This document shows positions 1 to 21,478 of a DNA stretch of 22,232 nt, in pieces. Source of the DNA: Octopus sinensis (lineage: Eukaryota). How positions within the stretch are numbered: the stretch's first letter is position 1; each line of letters starts with the position of its first letter. Position numbers and translations under genes: made by a program. The notes beneath the pieces are model-generated. The model was not told where the DNA came from. It made no database searches and worked only from the letters and a program-made list of their open reading frames with translations. The stretch is from contig NW_021836364.1 of NCBI RefSeq assembly GCF_006345805.1, positions 1 to 22,232 of the forward strand, given 5' to 3'.

Positions 1-877
1 GTTAAGAGAAACACTAAACACTATTGTAAAAGTGATAAACTATATTCGATCTCGACCACTTAATTATCGAATTTTCCAAACTCAAATAATAATGGCTTTT
101 AAAAAAAGTTATTATTGTGGATAATGAAAATAAAAAAAGGAATAACATCAATGTTCCCAATGCTTGAATATCATCTCGGACACAACCCACCGGATAATGT
201 TCTTCTAAGTCTGATAATCAAACATCTGGAAAATCTCAAGACAAAATTTGATGATTATTTTCCTGTTGAAGACCCAATTCCAAACTGGATCGTTCAACCT
301 TTCTTGACCTCATTTAAAGAATATCAGGAACTCAATTTTCAGCAGAGCTTGATTGAACTTCAATGTAATCAGTCTGCTCAGATTATTTTCAAATGTACTT
401 CATTATTAGATTTTTGGTATTCTCATTAATAATTACTTTTTATTGTTAGGTGTCAGATGGCGAAAGAATTCCCCATTTTGAGTAAAACTGCATTGGAATC
501 AATACTTGCATTCCCCACTACTTATCACTGTGAAATGGCGATGTCGTGTCTGACTTTTCTAAAAACAAAATATAGAAATAGACTACGGGTACAAGATGAT
601 ATGCGAGTAGCTTTGTCGAACATAGAGCCTGATATAAGTAAAATTATTCTGAACAAACAAGATCAGAAATCTCACTAAATTACTATTAAATTTTCTGTTA
701 TTTTCATAATGTTCATGTTATTTTTATAATAAATATTCGAACATGTCTAAACCTGGCCCTGACGAGGTCAAAAATTGTGCGCTAATACCAAAAAATGTTT
801 ATTTTATTTAAGGTGGTCCCCACAAAATTTTATAGTTCAAAAGTGGTCCCCAGTCTAAAAAAGGTTGAGAACCGCTG
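1..877 (+). mobile_element. hAT DNA transposon (Buster/Charlie, ZBED5/SCAND3-like), internally deleted 3' part with intact right end
   Basis: Frame at 2-100 reads LRETLNTIVKVINYIRSRPLNYRIF. ORFs 115-429 and 457-678 join through a 33-nt GT-AG intron (417-449) to give LLDFWCQMAKEFPILSKTALESILAFPTTYHCEMAMSCLTFLKTKYRNRL (hAT dimerization region). Terminus GGTTGAGAACCGCTG (863-877) is followed by CTATATAC, an nnnTAnnn Buster-type target. Confidence 0.9.
417..449 (+). other. 33-nt spliceosomal intron in hAT transposase
   Basis: GTATTCTC...TTGTTAG contains in-frame stops; removal fuses DF-W-CQMAKEFP, matching the hAT consensus DFW-x4-EYP. Confidence 0.8.
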
Positions 878-886
878 CTATATACT

Positions 887-1098
887 ATGGATTGTTCACG
901 TTTGGTTTTCCAAAACAAAAGAAGTTATATAAGAAATAACAATGAATATGATCAAATCAAGTCAATTCTCCAAGGGATCGATGTAAAGACAAGAAATAGA
1001 TATTAGGAAAGAAGGCTTTTGACCAAGTCAAAATCTTTTATACTATTAAATGACTGCCTTTATTATCGTGTTGAAAACGGGAGTCACAAATTAGTTAT
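887..1098 (+). mobile_element. Ginger2/Tdd-like integrase, N-terminal fragment of the outer (interrupted) element B
   Basis: ATG 887 reads MDCSRLVFQNKRSYIRNNNEYDQIKSIL...*...KSKSFILLNDCLYYRVENGSHKLVI. This aligns with the N-terminus of the 1203-2387 integrase (RSIHINSKGEYDSILLYL...KTLHFADDQLFSYSKSGTHKIVI) and stops abruptly at TGTCG (1099). Confidence 0.7.
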
Positions 1099-1137
1099 TG
1101 TCGTAAGTTATAGCGTCCGGGCCAGTTCTAAGTGTCC

Positions 1138-1164
1138 GGAGTGATAAATCGGATTTATCACTCC
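1138..1164. repeat. Perfect 13-bp-arm palindrome in the subterminal region of element A
   Basis: GGAGTGATAAATC-G-GATTTATCACTCC. Confidence 0.95.
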
Positions 1165-1202
1165 AAATTATTATGATTTTGGGAATAAATTTTAAACTGT
1201 TC

Positions 1203-2387
1203 ATGGTGCGCTCGATACACATCAATAGCAAAGGAGAATATGATTCTATTTTACTATATCTATTGTCTAAAAAATATGAACCTGGAATGACAGAAACCAA
1301 AAAGCGAACAATTCGAAGAAAGTGTAAAACTCTTCATTTTGCAGACGATCAATTATTCTCTTATTCCAAATCAGGAACACATAAAATTGTTATATGTCCT
1401 TTTGAACATGAAAGGATTCAATCTATTCTTTGTGATGAACATAATGAAGGACATCCTGGGTTCAATAAAATGTGTTATCTAATTTCTCAAAAATATATTG
1501 GAATTAAACAATGTATAATTCGTGATTTTGTATCAAAATGCATACCGTGCCAATCATTTAACTCTTTAAGTACTTGTGAAAATATCAGAATGATTTCTGT
1601 GGAAAAAAAATACGAAAGATTTATCGCCGACTGTATAGATCTAAGGCGGTATTCTGCAAATAATGACAATTTTAAATGGATACTTACTGTCATCGATGCA
1701 TACACAAAGTTTGCATGGTCATTCGCGTTAGAGAATAAAACATCACAAAGCATCTATAATGCAATTGAGAGTTTATTCCAGACTGTCGGTCCTCCAATTT
1801 ATTTTCATTCGGACAATGGAAAGGAATTCCGCAACAAAGAAGTTTCAAAACTTCTTGATGATTGGAAAATAACTCCGATAAATGGAAGACCAAGACACCC
1901 ACAATCTCAAGGACAAATAGAAAGATATAACCAAACTCTCAAACGTTGGTTGGGGAAGACTTTGTTCGCAACAGAATCTATAAGGTGGAGAGAAATTCTA
2001 CAGAAGGTGGTGTATAAATACAACATAACTTGTCATCGCGCAACTGGAAAGTCACCATTTTGGTTAGTCTCTTTTTATTTACCCAGTCTATTTTACGGAA
2101 TAACGGGTTTTAATATTTTGCCATGTGGAGGCGCAGAAGAAGAGATTAACTCAGAATCGGAAGAAACGGAATTATCCTTAGAAGTAAAAACTCATAATGA
2201 AAAGTATAAAAGAAAAGTTACAGAAGACGCAAATAAAAATTTTCGAAAAAAAGATATCACAATTGGAGATAATGTTACAATTAAAATTGATTTCGATAAA
2301 AATATAAAAACAAGAAAATATCCACTCACTAATTTTTTTAGCAAGGAACAATTTCTAGTAGTGGAAGAAGTTTCTCTGCTTTATTAA
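1203..2387 (+). CDS. Gypsy-like DDE integrase/transposase (HHCC zinc finger, rve core, C-terminal extension)
   Basis: HNEGH...CIPC zinc finger; catalytic IADCID, HSDNG and QIER with D-35-E spacing. Probable start is ATG 1203. A 24-nt in-frame intron (2063-2086) converts KSPFWLVSFYLPSLFYG to KSPFCLFYG. The last few codons are probably a deletion junction. Confidence 0.9.
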   Translation: MVRSIHINSKGEYDSILLYLLSKKYEPGMTETKKRTIRRKCKTLHFADDQLFSYSKSGTHKIVICPFEHERIQSILCDEHNEGHPGFNKMCYLISQKYIGIKQCIIRDFVSKCIPCQSFNSLSTCENIRMISVEKKYERFIADCIDLRRYSANNDNFKWILTVIDAYTKFAWSFALENKTSQSIYNAIESLFQTVGPPIYFHSDNGKEFRNKEVSKLLDDWKITPINGRPRHPQSQGQIERYNQTLKRWLGKTLFATESIRWREILQKVVYKYNITCHRATGKSPFWLVSFYLPSLFYGITGFNILPCGGAEEEINSESEETELSLEVKTHNEKYKRKVTEDANKNFRKKDITIGDNVTIKIDFDKNIKTRKYPLTNFFSKEQFLVVEEVSLLY

Positions 2388-2530
2388 ACGTGAAATCATC
2401 CGTGATGTTGTTATCAACTGTGACATTTGCCGCTTTTCTGGACCTTTAAAGGACCATGATACAGAATTTCACGTTTTTGCTAATAAACCAAATGAAAGCT
2501 TTCAAATGGATTTAATCAATCTTAAAAGGT
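2383..2530 (+). mobile_element. Element B integrase, middle fragment (CxxC of zinc finger to first catalytic D)
   Basis: IKREIIRDVVINCDICRFSGPLKDHDTEFHVFANKPNESFQMDLINLKR. Confidence 0.75.
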
Positions 2531-2660
2531 GCTTTTTCTGATTTTTTCATCATTTATGTAATATTTTTTGATTTTTACAAAAACTGTAATATCGATAATT
2601 AATTTCCCTTTTTCTGATTATTTTAGATTTTTGAGTTCCAATGATTCTTTTTCATGGCTG

Positions 2661-2851
2661 TTAACTTGTATTGATGTATACAGTAATAGATTTTTCATCA
2701 TGATTTACTGATCCACTGTTTCCGTGAAATTTTCTTAACTTGATACCATTTCGTAATTTAAACTTTTCTAGCCACCCACGACTTGCTTTAAATTCTGGAA
2801 AATTTTTTCCAAACTTAAGAGCTTTTGCAATTAACATCGAATCTGATGGAT
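2661..2851 (-). mobile_element. pogo/Tigger transposase fragment (CENP-B-type HTH)
   Basis: KALKFGKNFPEFKASRGWLEKFKLRNGIKLRKFHGNSGSV; no TIR or TA duplication seen. Confidence 0.85.
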
Positions 2852-3297
2852 TCACAAGAAAGATAAAAAATAAATCTGGACTCGAGGTTTCAAAAAATAT
2901 TCAAGATATATTTATCGAGCATGGACCATGTCTATATCTACAAACAGATAATGGGACAGAGTTCAATAATTCTTACCTTACTGACTTGTGTGGAAAATAC
3001 AACATTCTCCAAATTCACGGAAGGCCTAACAATCCACGCAGTCAAGGGATCATTGAGCGCTTCAAAAATGATTTTAAATTGGGAGATATGGTTTTCTATA
3101 AAAATTTATAAATATAGGTCCGAATAAAAAAGGATTTTGGAACGAATCCTTCACTAAAATTAAATAAATTTGAAAGTCCATATGGTTCTCCGGTTAAAAT
3201 TGTTCAGATTTTTTCAAATAACTATGCTGAGATTGAGAAAAAAGATGGCTCAAAAGATAAAATTCAAATTCATCGGCTTAAAAAGAAAATTAATTAA
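2852..3297 (+). mobile_element. Element B integrase, core and C-terminal fragment with internal deletion
   Basis: LQTDNGTEF...GRPNNPRSQGIIERF, then a jump to FKLGDM. A 27-nt intron (3091-3117) joins to VRIKKDFGTNPSLKLNKFESPY...KKIN*. Confidence 0.85.
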
Positions 3298-3329
3298 TTT
3301 TTTGAATTTTTATTAAAAATTTGTTTCAA

Positions 3330-3940
3330 TCTGAGAGTTAAACACCGATATATGCGTGCGGATAAATGCAGTGTTCTCAAAGTCTGTAAAAGGACGAGGG
3401 GTTACACTAATTACGCTCCTAGGTTATTGCTGAACGGGTCAGCGATTGCTGCAGTTGATCGGATGACTTATTTGGGCGTGCTCTTTAAGCCGTCCGGTAA
3501 GTTTGATGATCACATTGCACGTACGAAAATGCGTGCAATTCAGCGATTAGGCGCGTTGCGTGCTTTCCGGCTGCGGAGAGGTGCTTGGCTACGTGTGTTT
3601 AACACCATGGTGTTACCCGTGTTGACCTATGGTGTACATGCCTGGCACTTCTGTGAGGACCGAGAGAAGTACGTTGACGCGCTCAAGAAAGTCAGAAGAC
3701 GAGCCATCCGGCTAGCCCATGGCTTAGGATGGCGAGTGGAGCTCACGGACACCCAGGAATTGTCCCTCAAAGGCCTCCCTGAGGTCTTAGAAAAGATAAT
3801 GTCTGGGTGGCAGGTAAGACGGTAAGTCTTAGTTTGCGGCTGAGAGGCGAGCGTGTGTGCGGGACTGAAAAGGCAGAAATGCCGAAGTCTTAATTATACC
3901 CTCACTAACAGCCTTTTATTTAAAATAAAATTTTTCCTTC
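3330..3940 (+). mobile_element. 5'-truncated non-LTR retrotransposon (L2/I/Jockey-like RT C-terminus and 3' UTR)
   Basis: ORF 3352-3825: TYLGVLF...DDHI...FNTMVLPVLTYGVHAW...KKVRRRAIRLAHGL; GC-rich; AATAAA near 3925. Confidence 0.8.
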
Positions 3941-4019
3941 CATCTGGTGCTGAACTTTTGTATAATTATATACATCCATATGGTTATCAATCATTATTTA
4001 TTAGCGAATCAATAATGTG

Positions 4020-4155
4020 CGCTCAGGGCGTAGGGCGCGTTGTGCATGTGACATAATAAAAAAAATAATAATAAATGAATATTGATTTTTTAAGTGCCGG
4101 GAGAAAAAAAACGTAGTTTAATGTACCGTGAGCACAAAAAGGTTGAGAAACGCTG
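4020..4155 (+). mobile_element. Orphan right end of a Buster/Charlie-type hAT element
   Basis: Subterminal GTGCCGGGAGA...GTACCGTGAG and terminus GGTTGAGAAACGCTG (4141-4155), followed by GGTTAGAC (nnnTAnnn). Left end not found; the start coordinate is approximate. Confidence 0.75.
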
Positions 4156-4164
4156 GGTTAGACC

Positions 4165-4560
4165 ATAAAAAAATTAATTATAAGAACAAACAAGAAAAAT
4201 TGAGTTATAAAATGATTATTCAGAAAATTTTAAAATTAGCAAGAAAATTGAATAAAAGAGATAAAGAAGAAAATATAATTTTTTTAGAAGATTCAAAATA
4301 AGTAAAGAAATGAATTAAAGGAATAAAATCGGAAAATAACACAAAAATAATGAAATTTCATATAATTCATTAAATGAAACTACATTTCAAATTATTCCTT
4401 TTAAATCAAATCAAAAAATAAAAATAAAACTAAGGAGATTTATCAAAAGAATACCACAACGTGAAGCAACAGCGTGCTCACACGTGGCTTAATTTATTAT
4501 TATTATTAGGTTTGCCTTCATAAATTAAGATAATTAAGCAGATTATTCAAGAAATTTATT
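4165..4560 (+). repeat. A-rich repeat, copy 1 of an inverted pair
   Basis: Shares blocks GAGTTATAAAAT..TTATTCAGAAAATTTT, TTAAAGGAATAAAA, AATAATGAAATTTCA and ACACGTGGCTTAATTTATTA with the reverse complement of ~8200-8610. Confidence 0.8.
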
Positions 4561-5429
4561 ATTAAATAAAATAATTTACAAATAAAATCAGTTTCAAAAT
4601 TAATCATTTGTTTTTTTTAAATATTGTTAAATATCATTTGTTATTTTGTTTCAATGTTCGTCCATTACCGAGTTTAAGAATCCTGATAATAGTTATCTGC
4701 TTTAATAATATAGTTAAAAAAACTATAAAAGCTTATAGAAAAATTTTTGATGTGATATTGCTGCATATGGACAATCAATACTCGACATTCCAGAAGTTAC
4801 GAACTATGTATCCATAGACACTATAAGGCGAGCGAGAGAAAGACCCAGAGGAAGCGTATTTTCACATTAGTCAATGTTCCCTATTGAAGAGGGGTGTGTA
4901 TGGTTTGCGAGAAAAAAATAAGATAAAATCTTCTTAAGCACTAAGAAGTTTCATATTTAAATCCTAAATGTCTTTATTTTTGTTTGGAGATGACATCTCG
5001 AGACAATTTGCGTATCCCCGCTGCATCGTGGATACTCCAGTTTAGAACCACTAAACATTAATGGATGCGAACAAATGTCAATCTTACCGAGTCTCTTCGG
5101 TGGGTTATACACTGGAATAACTCTCCTTTATGTGAAGTGATGCTATGTTTGAGGAATGTGTGTTTTCTCAAACAAATACAATACACATCACAATTAAAGA
5201 AAAGGTCGGATTCCTGTAAATATTTTATATCATTTTCCATTCAGAAAACCACGTCGTTCTCAGCATACAATATTTCTTAATAAAACAGACAAGAGAGAAG
5301 CAGTAGAGTGACGATGGGATAGCTTTTGTGAACAGGACCAGAGAAATGTTTTTTCAAATGCATTTCAAGTACACTCGGGCAAAAAAACAGACATTCAAGA
5401 CTTATAAACCAATTTGCCTGGCAAGACAA

Positions 5430-6603
5430 ATGCAGTTCGTGCGTCTACTGTCGAGTGCGATAACTCGTTACAATGACCGAAGGACGACGATTGGGTAGAC
5501 CGAATGAGCTATAGGTATGGCACTAACATCATCCTCTTTTTCGCAATTGCCATGATGAGCAGGACCTTCACAGGGTCGCATCTCGTTTGCTGGCATCCTG
5601 CCATGTTTACATGTTTGTCTTGTCATAAAATTTTGAGATTCTTACACTTCATTCGGGGATTCTTACTGCTGTGGACTAAGGGCACATACTACGTGGCCCT
5701 TGATCAAAAACTGCCCTCATCAGATGAAATCAAGAAAAAAAGCACACTGGCATACTACCAGGGGATGCACTACATCCTTTTGTCCATGAGTCTTTTGTTC
5801 TACCTCCTATCATGGCTTGGCGTTCCTACGTCTTCGGATCCGGTCTGAATCTGCCTGGAATAGTCAATAAATGCTCGATTGCTCATAAAATTGAACGAAT
5901 CTCAGAAAAGGAAAAAATAGCGAACTAAATCGCGTACCAAATCGACCATTATTTGCGACGGAGAGACAACTGGGATGGAACATCGAACAGAGTCGTGTTT
6001 CTTATAAAAATACTGATGTGGTCTGGGGGACGGAAACACGGAAACTATTTGTCTTTTGCATACTGCATCACCAAAACACTTTTCCTCTTCAACGCGTTTG
6101 GTCAATTTTTCTACTGAACAGATTTTTTGGCTTTCAGTTTCACATGTACGGTTTACATTCTGAACGAGTACATTCACGGAAAAGAAATAAACGAGTCCTC
6201 TTCTTTCCCCGCGGGTAACCTACTGCGATATCCCCGAACGGACCATCAAACAGACACACATCTACACAGTCCAATGCGTGCTTCAACAAAATCTATTCTC
6301 AGAAAAAATATTCATAATTATTTGGTATATGCTCCTAATTGTCGGAGTTGCGACTTTGATTTCGTACGTCAAGTGGCTTCTTTATTTCTCGATTCCCCGT
6401 CTACGGGACGACTACGTTGTCAGTACATTCAGGACATTGCTCCAACTGAGAACGATCAGTTCACCAAATTCATTAACAAATACCTCAAAAACGACGGATT
6501 CTTCATTTGTCGACTTATCGTACTCAACATAAACTGGATGATGCTTGACACGGTTGTCAACATTCTCTGGCAAGACTTTAAAAACAAGAACCTGAAAATT
6601 TAA
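5430..6603 (+). pseudogene. inx: Innexin (gap-junction protein) pseudogene
   Basis: Stitched frames give DDDWVDRMSYRY...CWHPAMFT-[25-nt intron 5613-5637]-YSYTSFGDSYCWTKGTYY...YYQ...LLFYL...GRKHGNYL...NAFGQF...SFPRVTYCD...TVQCVLQQNLFSEKIFIIIWY...YLKNDGFFICRLI. About 7 frameshifts (~5481, 5670, 5818, 6110, 6155, 6210, 6418) and an in-frame TAA (5926-5928). Confidence 0.9.
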
Positions 6604-6604
6604 T

Positions 6605-7938
6605 TGTCACAGGCTGGATAATGCCCTGGGTTGGATAATGCCCCTCAACGTTATTTTTTCAAATTAATTTTGATTAGATTTTTTGATTTTCTTAATTATT
6701 TTAGTAATTTATCAAAGTTTTTTTTTTCAAATTAATCTAGCGTGCAAATTTATTTTGGTTATCTAAGTTTTCAATTTGGAAAATAATAAGTATAATCGAT
6801 CAAATTTATATTTCAGAAATGGTTTTACTCAACCTTACCGAAGATGAACTTGAAGTAATCAAAAATATTCAAATAGATGTTTTTTTATATTGACCGATTT
6901 CAGAAATTTGAAAAAAAGATACAGAAAATTACAGAACAGTTAATTTTCGAAGAGGAAGGTTTCCCCAAAAGAAGAAACGACTAAACTAATAATTATTATA
7001 GATCGAACTATGAGGACACATTTTGGGAGAGATAAATTGCTTTCGATATTGAGAAAGGAAATTTATGCAGTAACCCGAGACGAAATTACTGCTGTGATCT
7101 CAAAATGCGTTCACTGTCAGGTGCATATGTATTGAACTATTCAAAATTGATGGCGACTAAGCCGGCGAAGCATCGTTTATAATAAATATAACATGGCGAA
7201 GCATGGAACGACCAAGAGGACACCTTTCGAAATTTTTATGCGAGGAAATAAGTTTCCCGGAAGAAATAAGATCGGCGTTATTGTCATTCGATGGAAATGA
7301 AGCGGTGAATAAAGTCAATCAGAGATAATTGGATCCGATTATTCGAAACGAGGACGATTGTTTGAATCAACAGAACATGAAAGCCATGTTCTTCCCGGAG
7401 AAAAAATGAAAAGGAGGCGGAAATGGAAATTTGATGAAGATTTAGCCGTAGGAGATAATGTCCTACTGAGACATGATATTGATACAAATCCAAATAATCG
7501 AAAATACCCCCTATACGATCAGATCGATTCAACTATATATGAAATATCGGAAGTTCATAAAGACACGTGCGCACTTAAAGATCTGAATGACAAATCATCC
7601 AACATCTACACAAAAGTCGCATAAAAAAATATGACTCTTATAGAAAATTTTTATATAATAAAAATTCATCAATTTTTAATATTTGTTTATAAATTGTAGA
7701 CCTAAAAGATTGTATAATTATAATAAAATACGTTATTGATTCGGAAAAATTTGTGATGCCGGTTTTTGCCGACTCTTGGAAAAATTCATTCAATCAAAAA
7801 ACTGATAAAAAATTGAATAAATCGACTTAATTCCATTATCAAGTTATTTTTAATTAATTATCAGGTTATTTTTGTTTGACTTTAATAAAATTTTTAAGGG
7901 GGTATTATCCAACCCAGGCCATTATCCAGCCTGTGACA
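6605..7938 (+). mobile_element. Non-autonomous Ginger2/Tdd-like element C, both TIRs and TSD intact
   Basis: 40-bp TIRs 6605-6644 and 7899-7938 (38/40 match, TGTCAC...GTGACA); 5-bp TSD TTAAT (6600-6604, 7939-7943). Internal remnants: THFGRDKL...SKCVHCQ, YNKYNMAKHGTTKRTPFEIF, VGDNVLLRHDIDTNPNNRKYPL. The DDE core is deleted. Confidence 0.95.
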
Positions 7939-8199
7939 TTAATTTATTGACTTTTGTTCGGATTTTGAATTTCATAGTACGAATTTCCACTTTCCGTATT
8001 TGCTACAGATTCTAAAGAATATTCACGAACTAACTAATCCATTCATTATGCTTGAAATTTAAACATTTTCATAAATCATTCCAATTTTATACTTTAGTCC
8101 GTTTTTTGTTATTTAGAAATTCACTTATTTTTTGCAGCTAGACCTGCGAACTATTAAAAATGACACGTAAAGATTTTCTCAAAATAAAGTTTAGTACAA

Positions 8200-8610
8200 T
8201 TTTTTTGTAATTAAAATAAAATTTATTTTTATTAATTATTTTTCATTATCTTAATTTTTACTAGAAAACTTAATAAATTAAGCCACGTGTTATTACGGAG
8301 TCGATTCACTTTGTTGTATTTTATTAATTTTTGATCACACTTTATTTTTTATTTAATTGGATGTAGAAGGAATAATGCGAGATGTGGTTTCTTTTAATAA
8401 TTAAATTATCTGAAATTTCATTATTTTTTGTATATTTCCCGGTTTTATTCCTTTAATCTGTTTCTTTTATTTATTTTGAAACTTCTAAACACTATTATTT
8501 TCTTAGTCATATTATTTATCAAATTTGCTCTTATTTTTTAAAAATTTTCTGAATAACAATTTTATAACTCGATTTTATTTATTTGTTCCTTTAATTATTT
8601 TTTTTCATTA
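8200..8610 (-). repeat. A-rich repeat, copy 2 (inverted relative to 4165-4560)
   Basis: Reverse complement aligns with 4165-4560 with the same block order, roughly 70-75% identity by eye. Confidence 0.8.
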
Positions 8611-8871
8611 TTATTAAAGTACAGTAAAATTTCTTGAATCCGCCGATTTTTTGCAATGTAAATAATATTTTATAGTTGAAGCATTAACCTACAATATAGA
8701 TTAAATATTTCTTTTTATATACAAATGACTAAATACATAAAATTATTTATATTCAAAAAATCAGAAATTTTATGTTTTTTAATTAATTTTATTAACATTT
8801 CCCCAATTCGCATAATATTTTCGTGATCAATGATCACATTTAAATTAAACATTTAATAATAAAAATAACAT

Positions 8872-9240
8872 TTAAATTTTATTTATTGTAATATAATAAG
8901 AAGTAATGCTTGATATTGTCTGGATAGAAGTTTCTATCTTTTTTAAAATATTTTTCAGCATTTTAATAGCTCTTTCAACGGATGCAGAGGATGCCTGACA
9001 GCGTGAAAGTAAAAAATAATCTCGTTGGCTAATTTTCGGTTCAGTCATCTCAATAATAGGTTTAAATCCGTTTTCCTCCATTCTTTTATTCATATAATTT
9101 TTAATATTTGCCTTATCATCATAAAAATGTAGTCCTTCTATGTCATAATATTCCCGATTGATTGAATAGTCGCAACATTCCGAAACTTTGAGAATATCTA
9201 TTATTTGTGAATAATTGCATATGATCTCCGTTAATTTCAA
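8872..9240 (-). mobile_element. hAT transposase C-terminal fragment (family distinct from the Buster copies)
   Basis: CQASSASVERAIKMLKNILKK resembles the hAT motif P-x-SxxVERSFS; no termini identified. Confidence 0.6.
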
Positions 9241-9339
9241 CTTAATATCGGGATAATTGAATATGCATAGTTAATAACTATTTGTCATTATTCTATTTAT
9301 TTTTATGGGAAAAAAATATCGGGATTATTTACATCATAG

Positions 9340-10491
9340 GTTTTCACGAGAAATTTCTCGCGGCGCAAATGCTAATAAAAAATAATCTCGCGGCACATAA
9401 TCAAAAATCAAAACATAATTATAAAATTTATTATTTTTACATAATTTTTCTATGTCTGGCTCAATATTTGATAAGGCCAGTCGCATTTCTGAATCTAAAT
9501 CCAGTAGATTTTTTCGCTTATTTGTTTTAATGTTTTGTAATGCAGAAAATCCCTTTTCACACAAATAGTAAAGAAACCTGAATTTAATCATATAATAAAA
9601 CAATATACAAGTCCATTAAGTCTTCCAGACATAGATGGTGCCCCATCTGTGCATACACCAACACAATTTTTAAAGGAAATATTATGTCGCGAGCGCAGCG
9701 CGCGACCGAGCGCTAGACGCGACTTTGACAGCTAACAAGCCTGTCATCAACAAATATATTTATTAAATTATTTAAAATTTTAACATGATTTAAAATTAAA
9801 ATTGAAATAACTTAAGTTTTCCATTGAATCCCATAAAATAATTTATAAGTAGACCTTAATAGAAAAAGTAAAATCAATGAATACTGAACGCTAATTTGGT
9901 TTAGGTTGTGAGGGGGGTAATAATTTAACAGATCTCATTGCTATTTTTTCGTTTTAATCTCTAAAATTAGGTCTTCTAATCAAAAATGAACTGTGCAGAC
10001 AGGCTTGCTCCTTCAGAAGATTCTTGTTTTGACATTTTAATAAATTATGAAGCATTTAGATTTTTTCTCATTATTCTAAAATATCCATTATAAATTTTAA
10101 AATATTATTTTTATTTATGAAATCGGTTTTAAAGCTCATTCTGCTTTGGCATCGATTTTAAATTTTGTTATCGAATATATTTAAACCCAAATACCAGCCT
10201 GGGTATTTGTCAATTTATAGATTTGTTGATTGATCGGATCTAGAAATTGAGTGGTCGCTCGCTGCGCTCGGTCGCTCGCTGCGCTCGCGACATATTATGT
10301 TTATTAAAATAATCAAATATCAAATTGTACATATCAATTGCACAAGTAGTAGTAACTAATGTTTTGCAGAAAAGAAATTGTTCAATAATAGTTTCTGACT
10401 TTTCAGTACGAATATAAATAAGTAACTGTGCAATTCCTGCTACGTCAGTTGATTCGTCAATTTGCAATGAATATAAATTTTTTTTAGCCAT
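9340..10491 (-). mobile_element. Buster/Charlie-type hAT remnant, internally deleted and interrupted by a MITE
   Basis: YSLQIDESTDVAGIAQLLIYIR...FLFCKTL...YFNKHN|ISFKNCVGVCTDGAPSMSG, then YLCEKGFSALQNIKTNKRKNL.DLDSEMRLALSNIEPDIEKL; subterminal GTGCCGCGAGA motifs near 9350-9400. Confidence 0.9.
9685..10292. mobile_element. 608-bp MITE with Ginger2-like ends
   Basis: 29-bp TIRs TGTCGCGAGCGCAGCG(C/A)GCGACCGAGCGC (28/29); 5-bp TSD TATTA (9680-9684, 10293-10297). Removing it with one TSD restores the hAT frame KHNISFKNC. No coding remnant recognised inside. Confidence 0.95.
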
Positions 10492-10539
10492 GAATTATTC
10501 ACGTAAAGAAAAATAGAGAAGAGAAGTTAACTAATTTAG

Positions 10540-10810
10540 ATGAGTCGCCGAACGGATGGACAGGCAATTCCCACGTAATATCGCGAACGATATCCGCTGA
10601 AAAAGCCAGCTCGTTTCACGACTGTCGTGACTCCTCCTCGAGATGATTAAACCAATCTCTGTACGAGTTCGCACTTACGACCATTTAAAGATAGACCGAT
10701 CTCCGCGAAACCAGACGTGATTTTGTTAATGTCCTCCAAAGGTAACATCGTCCAAGTACCAAAAATTGACATTGGACGCAAGGTTGCGTGCAATATGGTC
10801 ATCGGAGGCT
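10540..10810 (-). mobile_element. CRE-like non-LTR retrotransposon RT fragment
   Basis: HIARNLASNVNFWYLDDVTFGG (YLDD at 10747-10758), then frameshifted EDINKITSGFAEIGLSLNGRKCEL. Confidence 0.75.
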
Positions 10811-11299
10811 TTATATTGGAAGTGCGAATAATTGATTTAATTCAATTTATTTTTAAGGAGTATCATCCTAAAAATGATATTTGTGTGGCCTAATTTATCT
10901 GTCAGGTTCGGAGGACTAGATAATATCCTACCTGAACTAATAAAGTACGCGCCAATGAAGCTTGCTAGAACCATTGCAAACATCCTGAACAAAGAATTTG
11001 AGCAGAATAGCCTATTAGACCTCGGCAAAGGATGGTTAATTTCACTAAAGAAACCCGGAAACCATACCCAACTTAAGACAACTTAAGACCTATTAGCCTA
11101 GTATCGACGCTTCGGATAACACTCTCACTGGTTGCATTAGAAAGAATAAGAACTAAGATGGCAAATTTTCTTTGGGTCAAAACTGACAGTTACATACATT
11201 TTTTTAAATCTGCTTTATATGGAAAGTGCAAATAATTAATCTGACTTAAAGTATATTTAAGGAGTATCATTCGAAAAATGATATTTGTATGGCATAATT
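10810..11299 (+). repeat. 86-bp ungapped direct repeat pair (10810-10895 and 11214-11299)
   Basis: 71/86 identical; the copies bracket an RT fragment. Confidence 0.9.
10905..11170 (+). mobile_element. RTE-like non-LTR RT N-terminal fragment
   Basis: GLDNILPELIKYAP...ILNKEFE...LGKGWLISLKKPG, then frameshifted NLRPISLVSTLRITLSLVALERI. Confidence 0.75.
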
Positions 11300-11994
11300 A
11301 GTACAATAATTGATTTCTATAATATAAATTTAGTAAACTAGTAAATATTAGATACGTGCCAAAAATCGAGTCTGTAAATTATAGTTCACTTACATGATTG
11401 TCTGGAAATACTACAATTATTTTTTTGATTATAATCAATTCCATAATTTTGTGTACAAGAATTATTGCAGATGCTTATTGATTATATTATTAGTCAATTA
11501 TTAAATTTCAATGTATTCTTTAAAAAAGTGATTTTAGCCAAAAACTCAAAAAATCAATTTATTAAACTACTAACTCAATTCGAGCAGATGCAATATAATT
11601 ACTTATATAATTAAAAAAATGACTTGTTATGATTGCCATGATTTTGAAAATGAACTTAAGTGATTAACCCAGTTGGTACTATTTACTCTCAAACAGCCCG
11701 ATTGGAAGACGCCTGTTAAAAACTGTATTTTAGTGGTTAGATAATCATACTTTGGTTTTAGCTTGGTATTGAGTGGTACTTAAAAGTAGGTTGGATGGTT
11801 TGCACTAGGAGTCGGAAATGACTTGTTTTTATTAATCTCAAATATATTTTATTGTATTTGCTAATCTGACTGCACTCCCCTGCGGCGTCGCTAAAACCGT
11901 ATCAAAGAGCGACTTTCAGCGTAGACACCGCTCTAACATTCCATTATACATAATTAGCGTAGTTATCATTACTGTTTTTAGTTGCTGTCCCCGC

Positions 11995-12977
11995 ATGGAA
12001 GGTCAACTGAAATGTACCAAATGTAAAGAAGTAATTTATACAAAAAACCCACATTTGCGTCTTATGGACTCATTTTATCACACTAACTGTCTTCAGTGTT
12101 CTGTGTGTTCTCAAGTACTCACAGATCTTTGTTACGTGAGGGACGAGATTTACTGTTTTAACGACTATACAATGTTTATATAAAAACTTAGTTTGTAGGA
12201 ATTTTAAGTTTTGTCCGTTGTGTAAGGTCCAAATTGAACTAAATACATTGGTGTATACCATCAAGTCACATATGTATCATGTTGAATGCCTCAAGTGTCG
12301 GTGTTGTAATAAAGAACTCAAAACTGGGGACTTCTTTTCCTATGCTGATAAATCCACACTTTACTGCATGGACTATTATCACAAAAATATATGTTTGGTA
12401 ATTGAGCTATTTTTAGTAAAAACTGAAAACACTGCGGAATCGAAAAGAAAATCAAAGTCTCCTAAATCTTGTTCGGAAGCGAATGGGAGTCCTGAAAAGC
12501 CTGAATCCATTAGTGAGGAAGTTCAAACCAACCATGAAGCCAACAATAACCTCAAAAAATGCAAACAACGTGGACGGAGGACATCAATCAAACCACACCA
12601 AATTGGGCTTCTTACAGAATTGTACGAAAGTGAAAGAAAGCCATCGCGTCATACATTGGAAGAAATGACCAAATTGACTGGACTACCAATTCGCGTGATC
12701 CAAGTCAGGATGGGGGTCTCTAGTGTTAGGTCTGGTTTCAAAACAGGAGGTCCAAGGAACGGAGAAACAACCCGAGCAACTCTAGCCTCCTACCTTCCAA
12801 TCCACCTCCAGTAACACAGAATTTGGGGTCTTCAAACATCAGTTTAATCAAAGGCCACAAATCTTCCAGAATAACAGATCTGGAAATAATTTTTTTTCGT
12901 CATTTGTGACAGATGATCAACATTATGGGCATTATCGAAACGAATATTACCCAGAAAGTATGTCGAGGAAGCAATAA
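11995..12977 (+). CDS. Lhx1/5: LIM-homeodomain transcription factor, Lhx1/5 (Lim1/lin-11) class
   Basis: Two LIM domains (CTKC...HTNC..C..C...CFND; CPLC...HVEC..C..C...CMD) and homeodomain KQRGRRTSIKPHQ...KPSRHTLEEMTKLTGLPIRVIQ|VWFQNRRSKERR. Introns: 12174-12198 (25 nt), 12393-12416 (24 nt, in-frame, optional), 12704-12729 (26 nt, at the conserved Q|V site), 12811-12842 (32 nt, less certain; without it the stop is at 12909). About 291 aa. Confidence 0.9.
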
Positions 12978-13127
12978 ATCCAATGCTGTTTCTCCCTCAA
13001 GGCATTTTTAAACTCCTGATCAGACATTCCAGTACCCTCCCAATATGCATTTCTACAGAAATCTTAATTTTTAACATTCTGCTAGTCTAATAAATATAGT
13101 GTTTAAAATGTTCAGATTGCACTTTTT

Positions 13128-13424
13128 CTAAGGTTTAGTTTTAGAATTGTCGACCGAAATGGTTCTCATTTCTTTTCTACTTTCCTAAACATCCAAATAG
13201 TGATTTTGGGATACGCTTCTTCCAGGAGATCCAAAATACAAAATAATTTTCTTTCCAGAAGTTTTTTTAGAGATTAAGGCATGATCTGCTAACGAATTCC
13301 AAGAGATTTTATTTGATTTCCTCCGTGGTAATAACATAAGTTGCTTCCTCAACAAGTATTTTATTGACTGTTTAATTAAGTACATAGACAAGTCTGAAAT
13401 CATAAGTGACAATCAAAAACTCAT
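13128..13424 (-). CDS. Possible small orphan gene (speculative)
   Basis: ATG 13424, then a 27-nt GT-AG (13394-13420) that splices into the frame of ORF 13185-13412; a possible 30-nt second intron extends it to ~80 aa. No recognisable motif. Confidence 0.2.
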
Positions 13425-13559
13425 AAAAACGACTAATCTCTACGTCTTTGGCTAGGCTCCAAAATCTGGAAACTTGGTGAATTTTTTGTATTAAAAACTA
13501 GAAATTGACAAGAAATAAAGTTATCTTTTGATAAAAAAAGAAATTTAATTTAACTAAAA

Positions 13560-14080
13560 TGGAAGGATTCAGGTATCGACTTTGGGATTATTTAGACATT
13601 CGAAGAGAATCCAATGCAATTATTGTTTCTTCGCTTCCTTTTCCAAATTGACTTCTTAGAAGTAAAGCCTTTTTTTTGTTTGCAACTTTAAAGTATAGTC
13701 GTTCCAACCTTGATATTTTCTTCGTCGTATCTCAATTTTTTTCAATCATTTTTTTGCTAACAATAATTAAATTTTCTAATGCACTTTCTTGTGCCTCTAA
13801 TAATTCCCTAGAATCAAAGGCTAAAAGTTTCTCAATTTCTTCTTCATTAATTTTCAAAGATTTCCAACATTCATAAATATGTAAAATCGGATTTTTTGTC
13901 GTAGAATGAATAGTATTGTTGTAATTATAAACATGTCTTTTATGCATGCGCAAGATTGTCCAAAACAATTTCGAGAACTTGCCGACAATATCAGGCGTTT
14001 TATGCTTTGATTAAATGAATAAATCGACCTTTCGACTTGCCTTGTATCCGAGGAGCACAAGGCCTCTCCACGTAAATGTT
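13560..14080 (-). mobile_element. Ginger2-like integrase C-terminal remnant D
   Basis: Across frameshifts: RPCAPRIQG/QVER..FNQSIKRLI, VYNYNNTIHSTTKNP, NIKVGTTIL. Confidence 0.65.
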
Positions 14081-14255
14081 TTATTATTAACGTAATTTTA
14101 GAAAATATATTTTTTTGTTTTCAAAATGAAATTTATTGCTAATTTTTTATGAGCCTGTATCGTTAATGCCGCCTGATTTATGAATTTTGAGATTCTTTAT
14201 TTCTTTGATTTTTCTATATTATTCCCCATACTAAATAGGATGAACCAAATTAATT

Positions 14256-14372
14256 GGAATCAACAGAAAATCAAGTGGAATCAACAACAAACTAGTGGGT
14301 CTAGCAGAAAACTAAGTGGGACTAACAGTAAATCAAGTGAATTTAATACAAACTAAATGGGATCAATAAAGG
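14256..14372. repeat. Degenerate 20-21-bp minisatellite, ~5.5 units
   Basis: GGAATCAACAGAAAATCAAGT, GGAATCAACAACAAACTAGT, GGGTCTAGCAGAAAACTAAGT, GGGACTAACAGTAAATCAAGT, GAATTTAATACAAACTAAAT, GGGATCAATAAAGG. Confidence 0.85.
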
Positions 14373-14419
14373 ATTATTTTTATTATAAATATTATTTCGT
14401 CTCAGAGTGCTGCCTTATT

Positions 14420-14995
14420 GTCAACAAGATGCCTACAAAGGAGATTGTCAAACGTTTTAATCAAACCATCACCCGAAAACTCTCCAAAATGAAAGACACA
14501 GATGAAAAAAAGTGGCTGGAAATTCTCAAAAAAGCAGTGTACCGTTATAACAAGGCTGTACATTCATTTTCAAATCAGAGTCCTTTCGAAAGATATCAAA
14601 AAATAAGCGGAATAAACACAGTTGATGCAGGTTATAATTATCAAATTATGTTTTAAGAAAATATTAAAAATCATTTTGAAAATTATGTTTTAAGTTGGAA
14701 TCGGTCGGCCTGATATGTTCAAATTTAGAAAATTCAAGTATTTTAACTTTGAATTTATATTTATGCGATTCTAATTGTCCAAGTCCAAAAAATTCAAACT
14801 TAATTTAAATCCGATTGATGTAAACTCAGTCTACTATAAGGCAATAAATAGGAAAATCAATGTCCACAATAGTAAATATAAATTTAGTGTTGGAGATAAA
14901 GTTTAGATAAAAAATTATACATAGTTTCGAGTTAAAAAAGATTATGGAACAAACCCTTCGTTGCGGTTGGATAAATTCGAGTCACCATTCTATCC
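14420..14995 (+). mobile_element. Ginger2-like integrase remnant E (relative of element B)
   Basis: VKRFNQTITRKL...KWLEILKKAVYRYNKAVHS...QSPF; later FSVGDK-[24-nt intron 14901-14924]-FRVKKDYGTNPSLRLDKFESPF. Confidence 0.8.
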
Positions 14996-15034
14996 GGCCG
15001 CTGAATAATTAACAATTTATTAAATAATTGAGGT

Positions 15035-15330
15035 AAACCCCTTTGGATTGCACTTATTATCGTGTCAGAGAAGCTCCGGACGCTTCCCCGACACGCTGCC
15101 CTCAACAACATAGTCAAGCGGACTCTTGAAACTGCCCGATTCCCATCACAGTTGGAACCGGTCGGCCTGATTCAGGAGGATGGTAATCGTCCTGACAGCC
15201 TAACGATTTTCCCCTTCGAAAATGGCAAGTCGCTCATCTGGAACGCAACTTGCACAGACACCTTCTCCGCCGGAAGCATCTTTACGTCAGCCACAGAGGC
15301 GGGCTCCGCAACTAACCTGGCAGAAACGCT
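15035..15330 (+). mobile_element. CRE-like non-LTR retrotransposon, zinc-knuckle remnant and restriction-like endonuclease
   Basis: FGLHLLSCQRSSGR / RHAALNNIVKRTL...LEPVGL..EDGNRPDSLTIFPFENGKSLIWNATCTDT. Confidence 0.8.
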
Positions 15331-15575
15331 AAAAATCACCAGCCTCTCCAATTCCTTTTTTGAAGTGCCCCAGGTCCCAGAGTTGTATAGAAAAATTGGT
15401 TCGATGTGTCCTATATCATTATTCTCTGTTTTATGTTATTTTTGTTTCAGTTTTAACCATAGGTTCTTCAGTCTGTGTAATGCTGCGTTTAACATGGTTT
15501 TTCTCCGTATGATATCTTTACTGTCTCCTAATAAGGAGCTAAGTTTCTTTGTGTGTCTCCAGTAATTAGCTATAG
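15330..15575 (-). mobile_element. RTE-like RT C-terminal fragment
   Basis: KKLSSLLGDSKDIIRRKTMLNAALHRLKNLW...*...IEPIFLYNSGTWGTSKKELERL. Confidence 0.75.
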
Positions 15576-15722
15576 TTTATTTAATAAAGTTCCTGTCACA
15601 AAGATTATTCAAACAGTATTTTTTAATAATCTAACTAAGAATTATTATTTCGTTTAAAAAGTAAATTTATTCTTTTAAGAATCATTTAAAAATAAAATCC
15701 AATTTTATTGCAAAAGATTAGT

Positions 15723-16535
15723 CTACTCTGCCTCTTCCTCAGAGCTCCCCAAATAATTTTTAATGTTTTCACTAATTCCATAAACTGATAATTTCAAAAT
15801 TGCCGAAACTTGATTATTAGTTGAATGATCTAAAGCCTGCATGTTATTTTTATCTAAAATTGTTGGATCGACTCCTATTCAATTTATGTTAAAATAATAC
15901 CATTTTTTAACAACAAATCTACAATATTTGCATATCCTTTAATTGCAGCTCGATGCAATGCGGTCATTCCCAATTTATTCTAAATATAATTAAACTGAAA
16001 ATACTGTGGAATTCACGTTTTCTGTAACTGAAAGAATCTTTTTTATTAATTCTTCGTCGTCAATATCCGCAGCCAAGTGAAGAAGAATATTTCCTGCACT
16101 ATCCACTGTGTTACAGGAGACCTCAAATATTGAAAAGATCAAAAAACTCCGTGTTTTATAGATTCCAGCACAAAATCTATTTCCTTTCGTCGACAAGCAG
16201 AATGAAGTGGTAAATCAATCAAAGAACAATTTTCCTGTACTAAAATGAGTTATGGTAATTATTATTCATGGGATTAATTAACAGGAACTAATTAAAATGC
16301 ATACTAAATGAGGTCTTTATCGAACCACATTTAGAACCGGATTCCACTTTTGTTTCGCTATCCTTTTGATCGTAGTTTTTTATATAAAAGAAACAGTTAT
16401 CATCAATTTCGATTTCACTTTTCTAAAATATACTATTTAATTTTACTTTCTTTTTTTTGTAGGTTTCATGTGCTATGGCTACGGTGACATCTAGATAATT
16501 ATTAAAAGTAGTTAAAGCTGACCAGGCTTATTCAT
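15723..16535 (-). CDS. Ankyrin-repeat protein (~204 aa, three to four repeats)
   Basis: Seven exons: 16535-16523, 16490-16447, 16422-16305, 16239-16148, 16121-16005, 15979-15901, 15874-15723. GT-AG introns are 32, 24, 65, 26, 25 and 26 nt and phases sum to 615 nt. Motifs LPLHSAC, GNILLHLAA, GMTALHRAAIKGYANIVDLLLKNGVDP. The three 3' introns are well supported; the 5' exons less so. Confidence 0.8.
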
Positions 16536-16635
16536 TTATAATTAAGTCAAAGTGTATTTGTCATATTTTATAAAATTTAAAATTATAATCTATATTTAAA
16601 AAAATTATTGTGTAAGTAAAAAATTAATATATTTC

Positions 16636-17390
16636 TGGCCGACGTCCCGAAACCACATTTTCCTACGAGCAGACTAATTATCTACGCGGACGATATCTTG
16701 GTTACGGATGTCTCGATGTGGGGACCCCGACACAGAAGAAGGTTGTCCTGGAGCAGACTAGAACCGTACTTGGAGGAACTTGAAATCTGGTGCAATGGTA
16801 AAGGCTTGAATCTCGCTCGGGACAAAAGTACCATTTGTTGGATTTCAATGGGTCGTGACAAAAAACCGACTTTCGAGGATTATGGGAACCTGATTATATC
16901 GAAGAACCTACGTTACCTGGGAGTAACTATAGACCCCACCGGGTCATACAACCCCATGTGCATGCAAAGCGGAAACAAGGAGCGAAAATCCTAAAAGGAC
17001 TGAGGTGTTTTTGTCTAAGCGCAGAAACGTTTCTACACATCTACCAGACTTGTGTTCAGCCACTAATAATCTATGGTTCGGAGGGCTGGTACCAAACTGA
17101 TGAAAGGGACCTTCTAATCGCCAAACTCGAAAAAACCAGACGATTTGCCATCAAACTGGCATTCGGCCTGGAGCTCAGCAGTCCGCTGGAGGACCTGCAT
17201 GAGCGGAGTGTTGACACGATAAACGCGATCCTGGCAAAAACTCGAATTCGCAGAGGGAGATAAGACAGTCTCCTGGGGCAAAACCGAGGTTGAGACCTTC
17301 GTGGCTCTCGTTATCAAGCCCCCTAAGCTCTAATTCCTCGGCCACTTTTCTTTTGGAGCTATTGTATTAAATAAACCATATTCTTCTTCT
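16636..17390 (+). mobile_element. 5'-truncated non-LTR retrotransposon (L2/I/Jockey-like)
   Basis: LIIYADD (16683-16694), LRYLGVTID, YQTCVQPLIIYGSEGW, EKTRRFAIKLAFGL; one frameshift; 3' UTR with AATAAA and a TTC-like tail. Confidence 0.85.
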
Positions 17391-17764
17391 CTAAAAAATT
17401 AAATTTTTTAAAACATACATTTTCAGTCTATATTGGGTAATCGAATAAACGACAATTACTGGAAAAAATATTCTTAAGGCCAAAGTATCATATTATATTT
17501 TCAGTGTTGGAATTTGTTTTTGAAAAGAACTAAATTCTATTTTATTTAACTAAATTTTATATTTAGAAATTCAACCTAAAGCACCGTTTCCCGATGGCTC
17601 TTTTGTTCCTCCAATTAATTGAAAGACTCGATAAGTTAAGATAATTAAATATACTAAAAATAACACAATTTGGAGATTTGAAACAATCAAGTAGTGCATG
17701 TTTTTCTCAAATAAAAATTATTCGATTTCACGTCTGAAAATAAGAAGTAAAGCTTTGTATTGCC

Positions 17765-18400
17765 TTTTGCAAGATAGAAATTTGTTCTTTTCTGCGCGTG
17801 ATGCGCTTTGCAATCATTGCAAGAAATCTAAGAGACAGTAGACCACATGGCCACTCTGTGCAACAGAATGTTAACAGTGACTATGTGTGAAGGCACGACG
17901 AGGTTGTAAAATGCATCCATTTGGACGTTTGCAAACACTTAGGAGTAAAGAAAATTGGGAAGCTAAAATCCCATTTGGTTAAATCTATAGTTTATGGACC
18001 AAAAATTTCGAGATACGGGTGGATACATCAATATCAACTATTAGTTCAATAAGCCAGATATCTTTATCCATGACAAGCTGAAGAATGAAATTACCATAAT
18101 TGAAATGGGAATTAAATCGCAGGAGAGACTCTTCAACTTGTTACAAAGCCTATATGGAAAAATTATCTGTTGAAGGCCCGACAAGAACATACATTCAGGC
18201 ACTTGTGATAAAGAAGACACTAGAAAGCATGGTGGAGGAGCATAGGCATGGCATTCATACGTCTAAAGAAAAATTTATTACAACAACCAGCCAGTTGTTT
18301 GCGAAGACTCCTCAGACAAAACAAATAGACAAATCATGAATGATTTGGAAAATAAAAGTGATAGTGCATTGGTGGATAGTTCTCCCCTGAGAAGAAAAAT
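17765..18400 (+). mobile_element. R4/Dong-like non-LTR retrotransposon 3' fragment (CCHC finger and RLE)
   Basis: Across frameshifts: LQDRNLFF...CNHCKKSK.TVDHMATLC...RHDEVVKCIH...EIRVDT...NKPDIFIHDK...ITIIEMGI...TYIQALVIKKTLES. Confidence 0.85.
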
Positions 18401-18430
18401 TTCCGAAGACTAGGGTCAATGAATTAGTTA

Positions 18431-20134: not shown

Positions 20135-20355
20135 TAATTAGTTTTGGGTTTAGTTAATGTTTTTTTGCTATTTTAATTATTTTTATTTAAAGATCATTTT
20201 CATATATACAAGTAATCATGATTTCATAAGATATATCGAAAAAGTTTTTTTTCCTTTTTTTCTTTGTACCAACAGCAACATTTTTGGTTTTAATATGAGC
20301 TTTTTTTGTTTCTTTGTGCTAACTTTAGGTGCCATTATTAACAAAATTTGTAAGT

Positions 20356-21265
20356 TCAATCAATCAATTTTATTGTAATTAACAGAGTAAGTGACAGGAA
20401 TTAAGGACAATGATAGCACGAGACTGAAGTCAAGGCAACTGAACTCTTCTGAGCGTGCGTCCAATTCATCTGTCGTGAGCCAGAGTTAAGAAAGCAGAGA
20501 TTTAAGAAAGCAGGAATTACTTATCCAGCAATATTGCTGTTTGAGGAAATCTGGGGGGGTCACTTGTTCCGATCGATGAACAGGTCGGTCACTTGAGATC
20601 TTCTCCGGAAAGACCGGATAGAATTCTCAATGACCAGTCGTATCTCTGGGGATCTGGACTCCGCCCAGCTTGGGACGGGGCCTCGTGGGTCAAGCCTGTA
20701 AGCTAGCTTCAGCACGTAGCGTCGAATTTTTTCTCATTGCCTGTAAATTTTCTCGAGATCTTTCGAGTAGTACCATGCTTCCATTCCGTTCAGCAAGCTG
20801 GGTAGGATGGTTGCGTGGAATACGAAGAGGAAAGTCTTAGTATCCAGATGCATGCTTGCTTCTTCTTCAATGGCTTTCGCTCTCTTTTTCTTGACATGCA
20901 CCCGAGTTAGCGTATGCAGCTGGGGCGGACAATTTCGGCTAGAGATCTGATCTGATGACTTTTTCGAGTTGATTTGTAGGTATGCGGATTTATCCATTCC
21001 TAACGAGAGCTGCTTGCTGGCGCACCACTCTTTTATTACCTCAATGTAGGTGAAAAGCCTCTTTTCTGAGGCCATCGCGTCCTTTGAGGTGTCAAGAATA
21101 AGGACGTTATCTGCATAGAGAAGTAGATTTGTCCGGGGGTCTTGGGGCAAAGGGAAACTGCTCATAACCAAATTGAAGAGATGTGGACTGAGGCAGGATC
21201 CTTGCGGAACCCCCCTTCGGAGTAAAATATCTCTTGAAAAGAATCCAGACTCGGAGATAAATTAG
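20356..21265 (-). mobile_element. 5'-truncated non-LTR retrotransposon (same L2/I/Jockey-like lineage)
   Basis: RGVPQGSCLSPHLFNLVM...LLLYADN (catalytic DD mutated to DN), ATILPSLLNGMEAW, EKIRRYVLKLAYRL; 3' AATAAA followed by a (TTGA)n tail near 20356. Confidence 0.88.
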
Positions 21266-21438
21266 CTCACTTGGTTTTAAATTAACCCCAGAGGTATTGA
21301 TTTTTTAAAATATTCTCATCATATTAAAATTTAAAAATAGATGGACCTTTTCTACATAAAACGCGAGACCTTTACTAATTTTCTGAATAAATATAATTAT
21401 CAATTAAATATTTAAATAATTTAATCTTACAATTCTTT

Positions 21439-21478
21439 TAATCCTATAATCCTATCCTATAATCCTAAATCCTATTTA
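21439..21478. repeat. Short degenerate (AATCCTAT)-type tandem repeat
   Basis: TAATCCTATAATCCTATCCTATAATCCTAAATCCTAT. Confidence 0.7.

Follow-up and report, generated by a model that had tools for sequence, protein, structure and literature searches.

The closest described relatives of the elements treated here are the Ginger1, Ginger2 and TDD transposons, which encode a stand-alone integrase-like transposase (H2C2 zinc finger plus DDE core) and have TGTNR inverted repeats and target duplications of 4-5 bp. Ginger2/TDD ends are given as TGTNR with duplications of 4-5 bp (5 bp in TDD-4 and TDD-5), and some Ginger1 genes are described as containing 1-4 GT-AG introns at positions conserved among diverged families and domesticated descendants (Bao, Kapitonov and Jurka 2010, PMC2836005); the passages of that paper considered here mention introns for Ginger1 only. 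We analyzed a 22,232-base window, the complete contig VCDQ01009379.1 of assembly GCA_006345805.1, filed as Octopus sinensis, in which several integrase elements of this architecture and one hAT-like element are interrupted by intervals of 24-33 nt with GT..AG ends. We conclude that four of these intervals are probably genuine spliceosomal GT-AG introns in transposase or integrase genes of DNA transposons (one hAT-like family and several Ginger2/TDD-like lineages) resident in a dicyemid genome, preserved as fossils in dead, truncated copies. Unlike those of Ginger1, the introns of the Ginger elements here measure 24-27 nt and occupy sites confined to single sub-lineages, and their carriers look like Ginger2/TDD, with a 5-bp AT-rich duplication and KRBA2-like relatives.

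Introns of this size are known from dicyemid host genes, where the median is 27 bp and two thirds are shorter than 30 bp (PMC6543705). Among animals, introns below 30 nt have been reported from dicyemids and myxobolid myxozoans only (PMC13644364). Dicyemid host introns (Ogino 2010, as cited in PMC6543705; PMC6736024; PMC13644364) resemble the intervals described here in that they fall in the same size class (their median is 27 nt), have plain GT..AG ends with reduced splice-site motifs and are AT-rich inside, but the reports concern conserved host genes, whereas here the carriers are transposase genes. The string 'transpos' does not occur in the text of the two dicyemid genome papers, and no account of ultra-short introns in transposase genes came up in a literature search aimed at this combination.

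Introns as such are not foreign to transposase genes. The Ac and P element transposase genes contain them, and in Drosophila the splicing of a P element transposase intron is regulated, with retention of intron 3 serving a regulatory role; nothing comparable is seen for the introns here. Gain and loss of transposase introns along lineages has also been documented for CACTA elements (PMC4158355) and for the Tc1-like TLEWI elements of bivalves (bioRxiv 10.1101/656579). In all of these systems the transposase message needs host splicing, as it would in the elements described here, but their introns are of ordinary host size, tens to hundreds of nt. Introners (PMC9860276, PMC12130899) likewise tie transposons to intron gain. 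In contrast to our elements, however, introners become introns on insertion; here the relation is reversed, the introns being parts of transposase genes. We saw no repeated element that generates introns, and the intron sequences are not similar to one another beyond chance.

Transposase genes interrupted by GT-AG intervals

The four intervals lie in four elements, given below with the intervals that they carry; here and in the text a slash marks the junction left when an interval is removed, or the boundary of a deletion.

1-877, plus strand: hAT-like DNA transposon, 3' part; 5' side cut by the contig end, internally deleted; ends ...AAGGTTGAGAACCGCTG, the terminus being read directly
417-449, plus strand: predicted hAT intron, 33 nt, GTAT..TTAG, phase 2 (TG/G), two in-frame stops
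1110-2387, plus strand: Ginger2-like element A; integrase reading frame 1203-2387; 3' end truncated, adjoins B
2063-2086, plus strand: predicted intron of A, 24 nt, GTTA..CCAG, phase 2 (TG/T), no stop if retained
2389-3297, plus strand: Ginger2-like element B; 5'-truncated, internally deleted (ERF/KNDFKLGD); Pfam rve match
3091-3117, plus strand: predicted intron of B, 27 nt, GTTT..ATAG, phase 0, two in-frame stops
14429-15008, plus strand: Ginger2-like element E; 5'-truncated, decayed; from the region of the catalytic E to the C-terminus
14901-14924, plus strand: predicted intron of E at the site used in B, 24 nt, GTTT..ATAG, phase 0, two in-frame stops

In the hAT-like element, removal of 417-449 yields LLDFW/CQMAKEFPILS (spliced reading ...DFWCQMAKEFPILS), while retention yields ...DFWYSH, two stops and LLFIVRCQMAKEFP, that is, 11 extra codons of which two are stops. 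These 11 positions are missing in 11 of 11 aligned homologs (FW-----------C), which were compared as proteins and not as genes, and the homolog consensus FWCxxxxEYPxLS corresponds to the spliced product. The C-terminal dimerization domain expected of the hAT superfamily (Pfam Dimer_Tnp_hAT) is matched in the spliced form only and is gone when the interval is kept. This match is marginal (21.0 bits against a cut-off of 21.4), but the assignment is supported by the 2688 homologs that a full HMMER search with the product returned (best E 2e-32) and the conserved motifs FWC...YP.LS...TTY.CE..FS and ...Q.QPSH are present. The element has a CAGCGGTTCTCAACC-type terminus; the window contains only its 3' end, and the contig stops before the catalytic part and the 5' end are reached. 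A second hAT-like copy in the window (~8875-10494, minus strand) is deleted across the FW site, and an internal deletion spans the same site in a hAT fragment on contig L004 of the same assembly; both are hence uninformative on the hAT interval.

In element A, removal of 2063-2086 yields SPFC/LFYG, and retention adds eight codons, in frame and free of stops. The eight residues are missing in all nine outside homologs that span the site (SPFx--------LFxG), as well as in E and in a further integrase element of the window, C (described below), both of which are contiguous there. In L001, L002, L003 and L008, the closest relatives for which DNA is available, no interruption is present at the homologous site or anywhere else in the reading frames of 454-456 aa. 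Element A itself has Pfam Integrase_H2C2 and rve matches, with no reverse transcriptase adjoining it, and has lost its last ~30 codons where it directly abuts B. Its product is 36-40% identical to stand-alone integrases of 454-456 aa that fill ~2 kb contigs from public sequencing runs; overall, its stand-alone relatives measure 409-456 aa, on ~2 kb contigs. Its named relatives include a KRAB-A domain-containing protein 2-like (KRBA2-like) protein and, from a microsporidian, a 'Tf2-9 polyprotein' that is just 409 aa long. KRBA2 is said to descend from Ginger2 (PMC3575427), and this relative is the sole hint for a phylogenetic placement with Ginger2 over Ginger1 or Gypsy.

The 5' subterminal region of A (1110-1140) contains TAGCGTCCGG and AAGTGTCCGG, variants of TAGTGTCCGG. 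The latter is repeated near the 5' end both in A and in the 40%-identical relative L001 (L001 14-47 and 236-250), and it may be a conserved transposase-binding site. A tandem-duplication origin of the interval in A was considered and set aside, as its resemblance to the downstream exon is weak and was judged not significant in AT-rich sequence. Additionally, the break between zinc finger and core in the metagenomic relative L007 proved to be an in-frame TAA plus a frameshift, not an intron.

In elements B and E, removal of the intervals yields LGDM/VRIKKDF in B and VGDK/FRVKKDY in E, so that both genes are interrupted at one exact codon boundary, GD-x/x-R. The intervals are missing at this boundary from A and C, where the strings IGDNVTIKIDF and VGDNVLLRHDI are unbroken, and from six outside homologs. 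The exons flanking the site are 56-61% identical between B and E, and the most plausible reading of the shared site is inheritance from an ancestor of the B/E sub-lineage. The site was judged against homologs of the A family; a homolog search with the C-terminal part of B found nothing. The interval of E is identical in L006 (VCDQ01009219.1 of the same assembly), a 99.4% copy of window 6604-22218. Just downstream of it, window 14925-14945 and L006 8334-8355 differ by one A in a homopolymer, a difference that neutral decay or an error of assembly could explain. Shortly before E, at 14247-14339, a 21-nt unit (AAATCAAGTGGAATCAACAGA) is repeated in tandem ~4.5 times.

Element B begins within the zinc finger and contains two further features, the second of which was absent from the preliminary description of this DNA:

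~2664-2900, minus strand: pogo-like transposase DNA-binding fragment (FKASRGWLEKFKLRNGIKL), antisense inside B, resembling the pogo-like element at 18422-20143
2529-2626, plus strand: further GT..AG interval, 98 nt, phase 2

Removal of 2529-2626 yields MDLINLKR/FLSSNDSFSWLL, after which the alignment to A and its homologs is ungapped. The interval contains a 12-nt direct repeat (CTTTTTCTGATT) with copies 76 nt apart, which hints at an original intron of 22 nt and its subsequent expansion.

All four intervals begin with GT and end with AG, as do 2529-2626 in B and 6879-6903 in element C. Among arbitrary intervals of these lengths such ends occur at a frequency of 0.22-0.25% when placed exactly, and of ~1.6% when 3 nt of slack is allowed; if hAT, A and the ancestor of B/E are counted as three independent events, the chance is ~4e-6. 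The lengths of 24, 24, 27 and 33 nt compare with 24-26 nt for the host introns of the window and with the dicyemid median. In dicyemid and myxobolid introns the branch-point signal is a short A-run preceding the AG (PMC13644364). The 3' parts of the B and E intervals are A-rich and those of A and hAT are T-rich, in introns that are very short and AT-rich.

These results bear out part of what the preliminary description had proposed. The coordinates, lengths and GT/AG ends given there for the four intervals are exact, and its claim that removal repairs protein motifs holds, each interval being the exact surplus relative to homologs; the residues that the intervals would encode are absent from all spanning homologs aligned. 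Likewise, B and E do share a phase-0 site with intervals of different length, A and C do lack an interval there, and the sizes do fall in the host range. The identification of the carriers as transposase genes of DNA transposons is upheld by the hAT dimerization domain, by Pfam integrase domains and by the TGTCA ends and 5-bp duplication of C. The difference in sequence between the B and E intervals was also noted there, and their likeness is indeed not above chance.

Host genes and the source of the contig

Three host genes in the window were recognized, two of which provide a yardstick for intron size:

~5477-6603: innexin host gene, assigned from Pfam
11995-12840, plus strand: LIM-homeobox host gene with introns at 12174-12198 (25 nt), 12393-12416 (24 nt) and 12704-12729 (26 nt)
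~15700-16250, minus strand: ankyrin-repeat host gene with introns at 15980-16004 (25 nt) and 15875-15900 (26 nt)

In the LIM-homeobox gene, three GT-AG introns must be removed to repair the LIM and homeodomain motifs, removal of 12704-12729 for example yielding VIQ/VWFQNRR. Contig L004, with ~84% nucleotide identity across this locus, has the same three introns at equal positions and lengths. The ankyrin-repeat gene gives Pfam Ank matches on its spliced product. The five host introns of these two genes measure 24-26 nt. Dicyema japonicum was obtained from the renal sacs of Octopus sinensis (PMC6736024). Because the host introns measure 24-26 nt and Dicyema inhabits O. sinensis, the contig is most likely DNA of a dicyemid parasite that entered the octopus assembly as contamination. 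In that case the true host of these elements is not the species under which the contig is filed, a point that the preliminary description overlooked.

At least two further contigs of this public assembly likewise have the appearance of parasite DNA. One is VCDQ01009219.1 (L006), with the same LIM-homeobox gene; another, VCDQ01013172.1, has a related LIM-homeobox locus (~84% identical) and encodes a protein listed at NCBI as 'LIM/homeobox protein Lhx1-like [Octopus sinensis]' (P0022). Scanning the whole window for Rfam families and tRNA genes gave no hits.

Element C and other transposon debris

Element C is the only integrase element of the window on which transposon ends were seen, A, B and E being truncated.

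6605-7938, plus strand: Ginger2/TDD-like element C; coding region decayed; Pfam zf-H2C2 and Integrase_H2C2 matches
6879-6903, plus strand: candidate intron in C, 25 nt, GT..AG, phase 0
6790-6816, plus strand: candidate interval in C, 27 nt, GT..AG; upstream of the start codon, with no coding frame 5' of it

The terminal inverted repeats of C are 40 bp long (6605-6644 and 7899-7938), 95% identical and start with TGTCA, and the 5-bp target duplication TTAAT is present on both sides (6600-6605 and 7938-7943). Its insertion site coincides with the innexin stop codon. Contig L006 starts exactly at the left end of C, which suggests an assembly break at the repeat. Of the features that characterize Ginger2/TDD elements, a stand-alone integrase with H2C2 and DDE/rve domains was thus found by Pfam on A, B and C, and TGTNR ends with an AT-rich duplication of 4-5 bp on C only; together, the integrase elements look like Ginger2/TDD.

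Both candidate intervals in C had been proposed previously. Removal of 6879-6903 joins MVLLNLTEDELEVIKNIQID to KFEKKIQKITEQLIFEEEG, and with them the frame of the start codon to a frame resembling the N-terminus of the homologs. Since C carries other frameshifts, we regard this interval as a plausible intron and not as an established one.

The remaining elements of the window are as follows.

18422-20143: pogo-like element with TA/CAGTCCGACC ends
~21760-21940: mariner-like tail
3298-3822, 15032-15562, 16620-17260 and 20737-21261 (minus strand): non-LTR retrotransposon fragments; two of the three submitted to Pfam match RVT_1

Inspection of the translations of the pogo-like and mariner-like remains found no GT-AG intervals, and their breaks resemble homopolymer frameshifts and deletions. 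The non-LTR retrotransposon fragments have long uninterrupted frames without tiny GT-AG intervals, as would be expected because their copying goes through spliced RNA. An inverted pair of ~335 bp (4165-4499 and 8271-8605, 77% identical) brackets the innexin gene and C, and could represent two small non-autonomous element copies or the ends of something larger. Furthermore, the minus-strand hAT-like copy is split by an insert of ~600 bp, which has GC-rich inverted ends (9668-9713 and 10264-10309; GTCGCGAGCGCAGCG...) and is flanked on either side by ATATTAT. As the insert is non-coding, it looks like a small non-autonomous transposon.

Origin of the introns and alternative explanations

We propose that the introns were carried in the master genes of these families. 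Because the elements move as DNA, such introns would be copied along into every copy, whereas retroelements, which pass through spliced RNA, would lose them. The transposase mRNA would be spliced by the host spliceosome as for host genes. Since the dicyemid spliceosome acts on introns of ~24-30 nt, the transposon introns would be of the same size. Introns of host size would then be an ordinary consequence of host splicing, expected of any gene resident in a tiny-intron host, and a special function is not needed to explain them. B and E would owe their intron to the ancestor that their sub-lineage shares. Different sites are occupied by the introns of A, hAT and B/E, and each appears lineage-specific, the hAT homologs having been compared as proteins. 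The Ginger introns most likely, and the hAT intron perhaps, arose after the families had settled in the dicyemid lineage.

Several points weigh against reading the intervals as spliceosomal introns of dicyemid transposons. We infer splicing from the DNA sequence, and none of the genes can be demonstrated as expressed, since every copy is decayed; all transposon copies are truncated or internally deleted, and C and E additionally carry stops and frameshifts. The interval in A is the weakest of the four when considered singly, as it is in frame and stop-free and could, taken alone, be an eight-codon insertion. At the FW/C site the hAT comparison covers proteins, and the genes of the homologs may have an intron there. 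The B and E introns are identical at 20 of 27 columns, but this value was reached by 195 of 2000 shuffles and unrelated introns score equally. The view that the two are alignable as homologous sequence was dropped after this test, and because the sequences are no more alike than shuffles, we argue for common descent of the B/E intron from position and phase only. Finally, the dicyemid origin of the contig is drawn from intron size and host biology and not from a match to a Dicyema record.

The decay of the copies invites the explanation that the intervals are small insertions in pseudogenized elements whose GT/AG ends arose by coincidence. Other indels do occur, such as the frameshifts in C and the one-nucleotide A-run difference between the window and L006 downstream of the E interval, and the interval in A is without a stop. 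This explanation nevertheless seems to us very improbable, as it would have to account for GT..AG ends in four of four cases when ~1.6% is expected for each even with slack, for lengths that all fall within 24-33 nt, and for the interruption of B and E, with flanks that diverged to 56-61% identity, at one exact codon boundary, which independent insertions would not produce. We consider it equally far-fetched that the integrase genes, notably A, are host genes domesticated from Ginger-type transposons in the manner of GIN1 and KRBA2, with the intervals being ordinary host-gene introns. The long, intact reading frame of A and the KRAB-A domain-containing protein 2-like sequence among its named relatives are compatible with domestication, and domesticated Ginger genes with conserved introns are known (PMC3575427, PMC2836005). 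However, the window has four diverged copies within 15 kb amid further transposon remains, C is bounded by inverted terminal repeats and flanked by a target duplication, A is 3'-truncated, fused to B and shares subterminal motifs with the L001 element, and B is internally deleted.

A different question is whether the tiny introns are functional. The preliminary description had suggested a host-range filter or a splicing-based control of transposase. Under a filter, only a spliceosome adapted to introns of ~25 nt would make transposase and the families would be confined to dicyemids; under a splicing switch, intron retention would tune their activity. In three of the four intervals in-frame stops would turn an unspliced message into a truncated protein, introns below 30 nt have been reported in animals only from the two groups named above, and regulated splicing of the P element provides a precedent. 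Against this stand the facts that the copies are dead, that the A intron would not gate expression because it is in frame and stop-free when retained, and that the pogo-like and mariner-like remains have no such intervals, so that the feature is not general. As the sequence offers nothing that separates a filter or switch from the passive expectation, we consider such a function improbable, though less so than either insertion or domestication.

For the proposed introns, two routes to host size had been suggested: compression to that size, or gain at it. For the Ginger introns the results favor gain within the lineage and make compression the less favored route, because each intron is confined to one lineage and the frames of the closest relatives are uninterrupted. 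Judged from the distribution of sites, one gain in each lineage is a more parsimonious history than a series of losses. The Ginger introns might still be shrunken remnants of an earlier, longer intron. We raise only tentatively, and as a possibility that we think is on balance doubtful, that the transposase introns arose de novo, with a length of ~24-27 nt from the start, once the elements had entered the dicyemid genome. If this were true, ultra-short introns would still be being gained in the lineage, born short rather than slowly shrunk, and the many datable transposon copies would record over time how introns are born and how their lengths change (27 versus 24 nt in B and E; 22 to 98 nt in B). 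In a stronger form of the same reading, dependence on a tiny-intron spliceosome would confine the families to dicyemids.

In practice the results serve as a contamination and annotation flag, since gene and repeat annotation pipelines that ignore introns below 30 nt will call these transposases broken. For the biology of dicyemids, they indicate that DNA transposons probably bear introns as extremely short as those of the host genes and that in two Ginger-like lineages these introns are apparently lineage-specific. Should the same be true across the genome, which has some of the shortest introns reported among animals, transposon families could serve to date when introns were gained and when their lengths changed.

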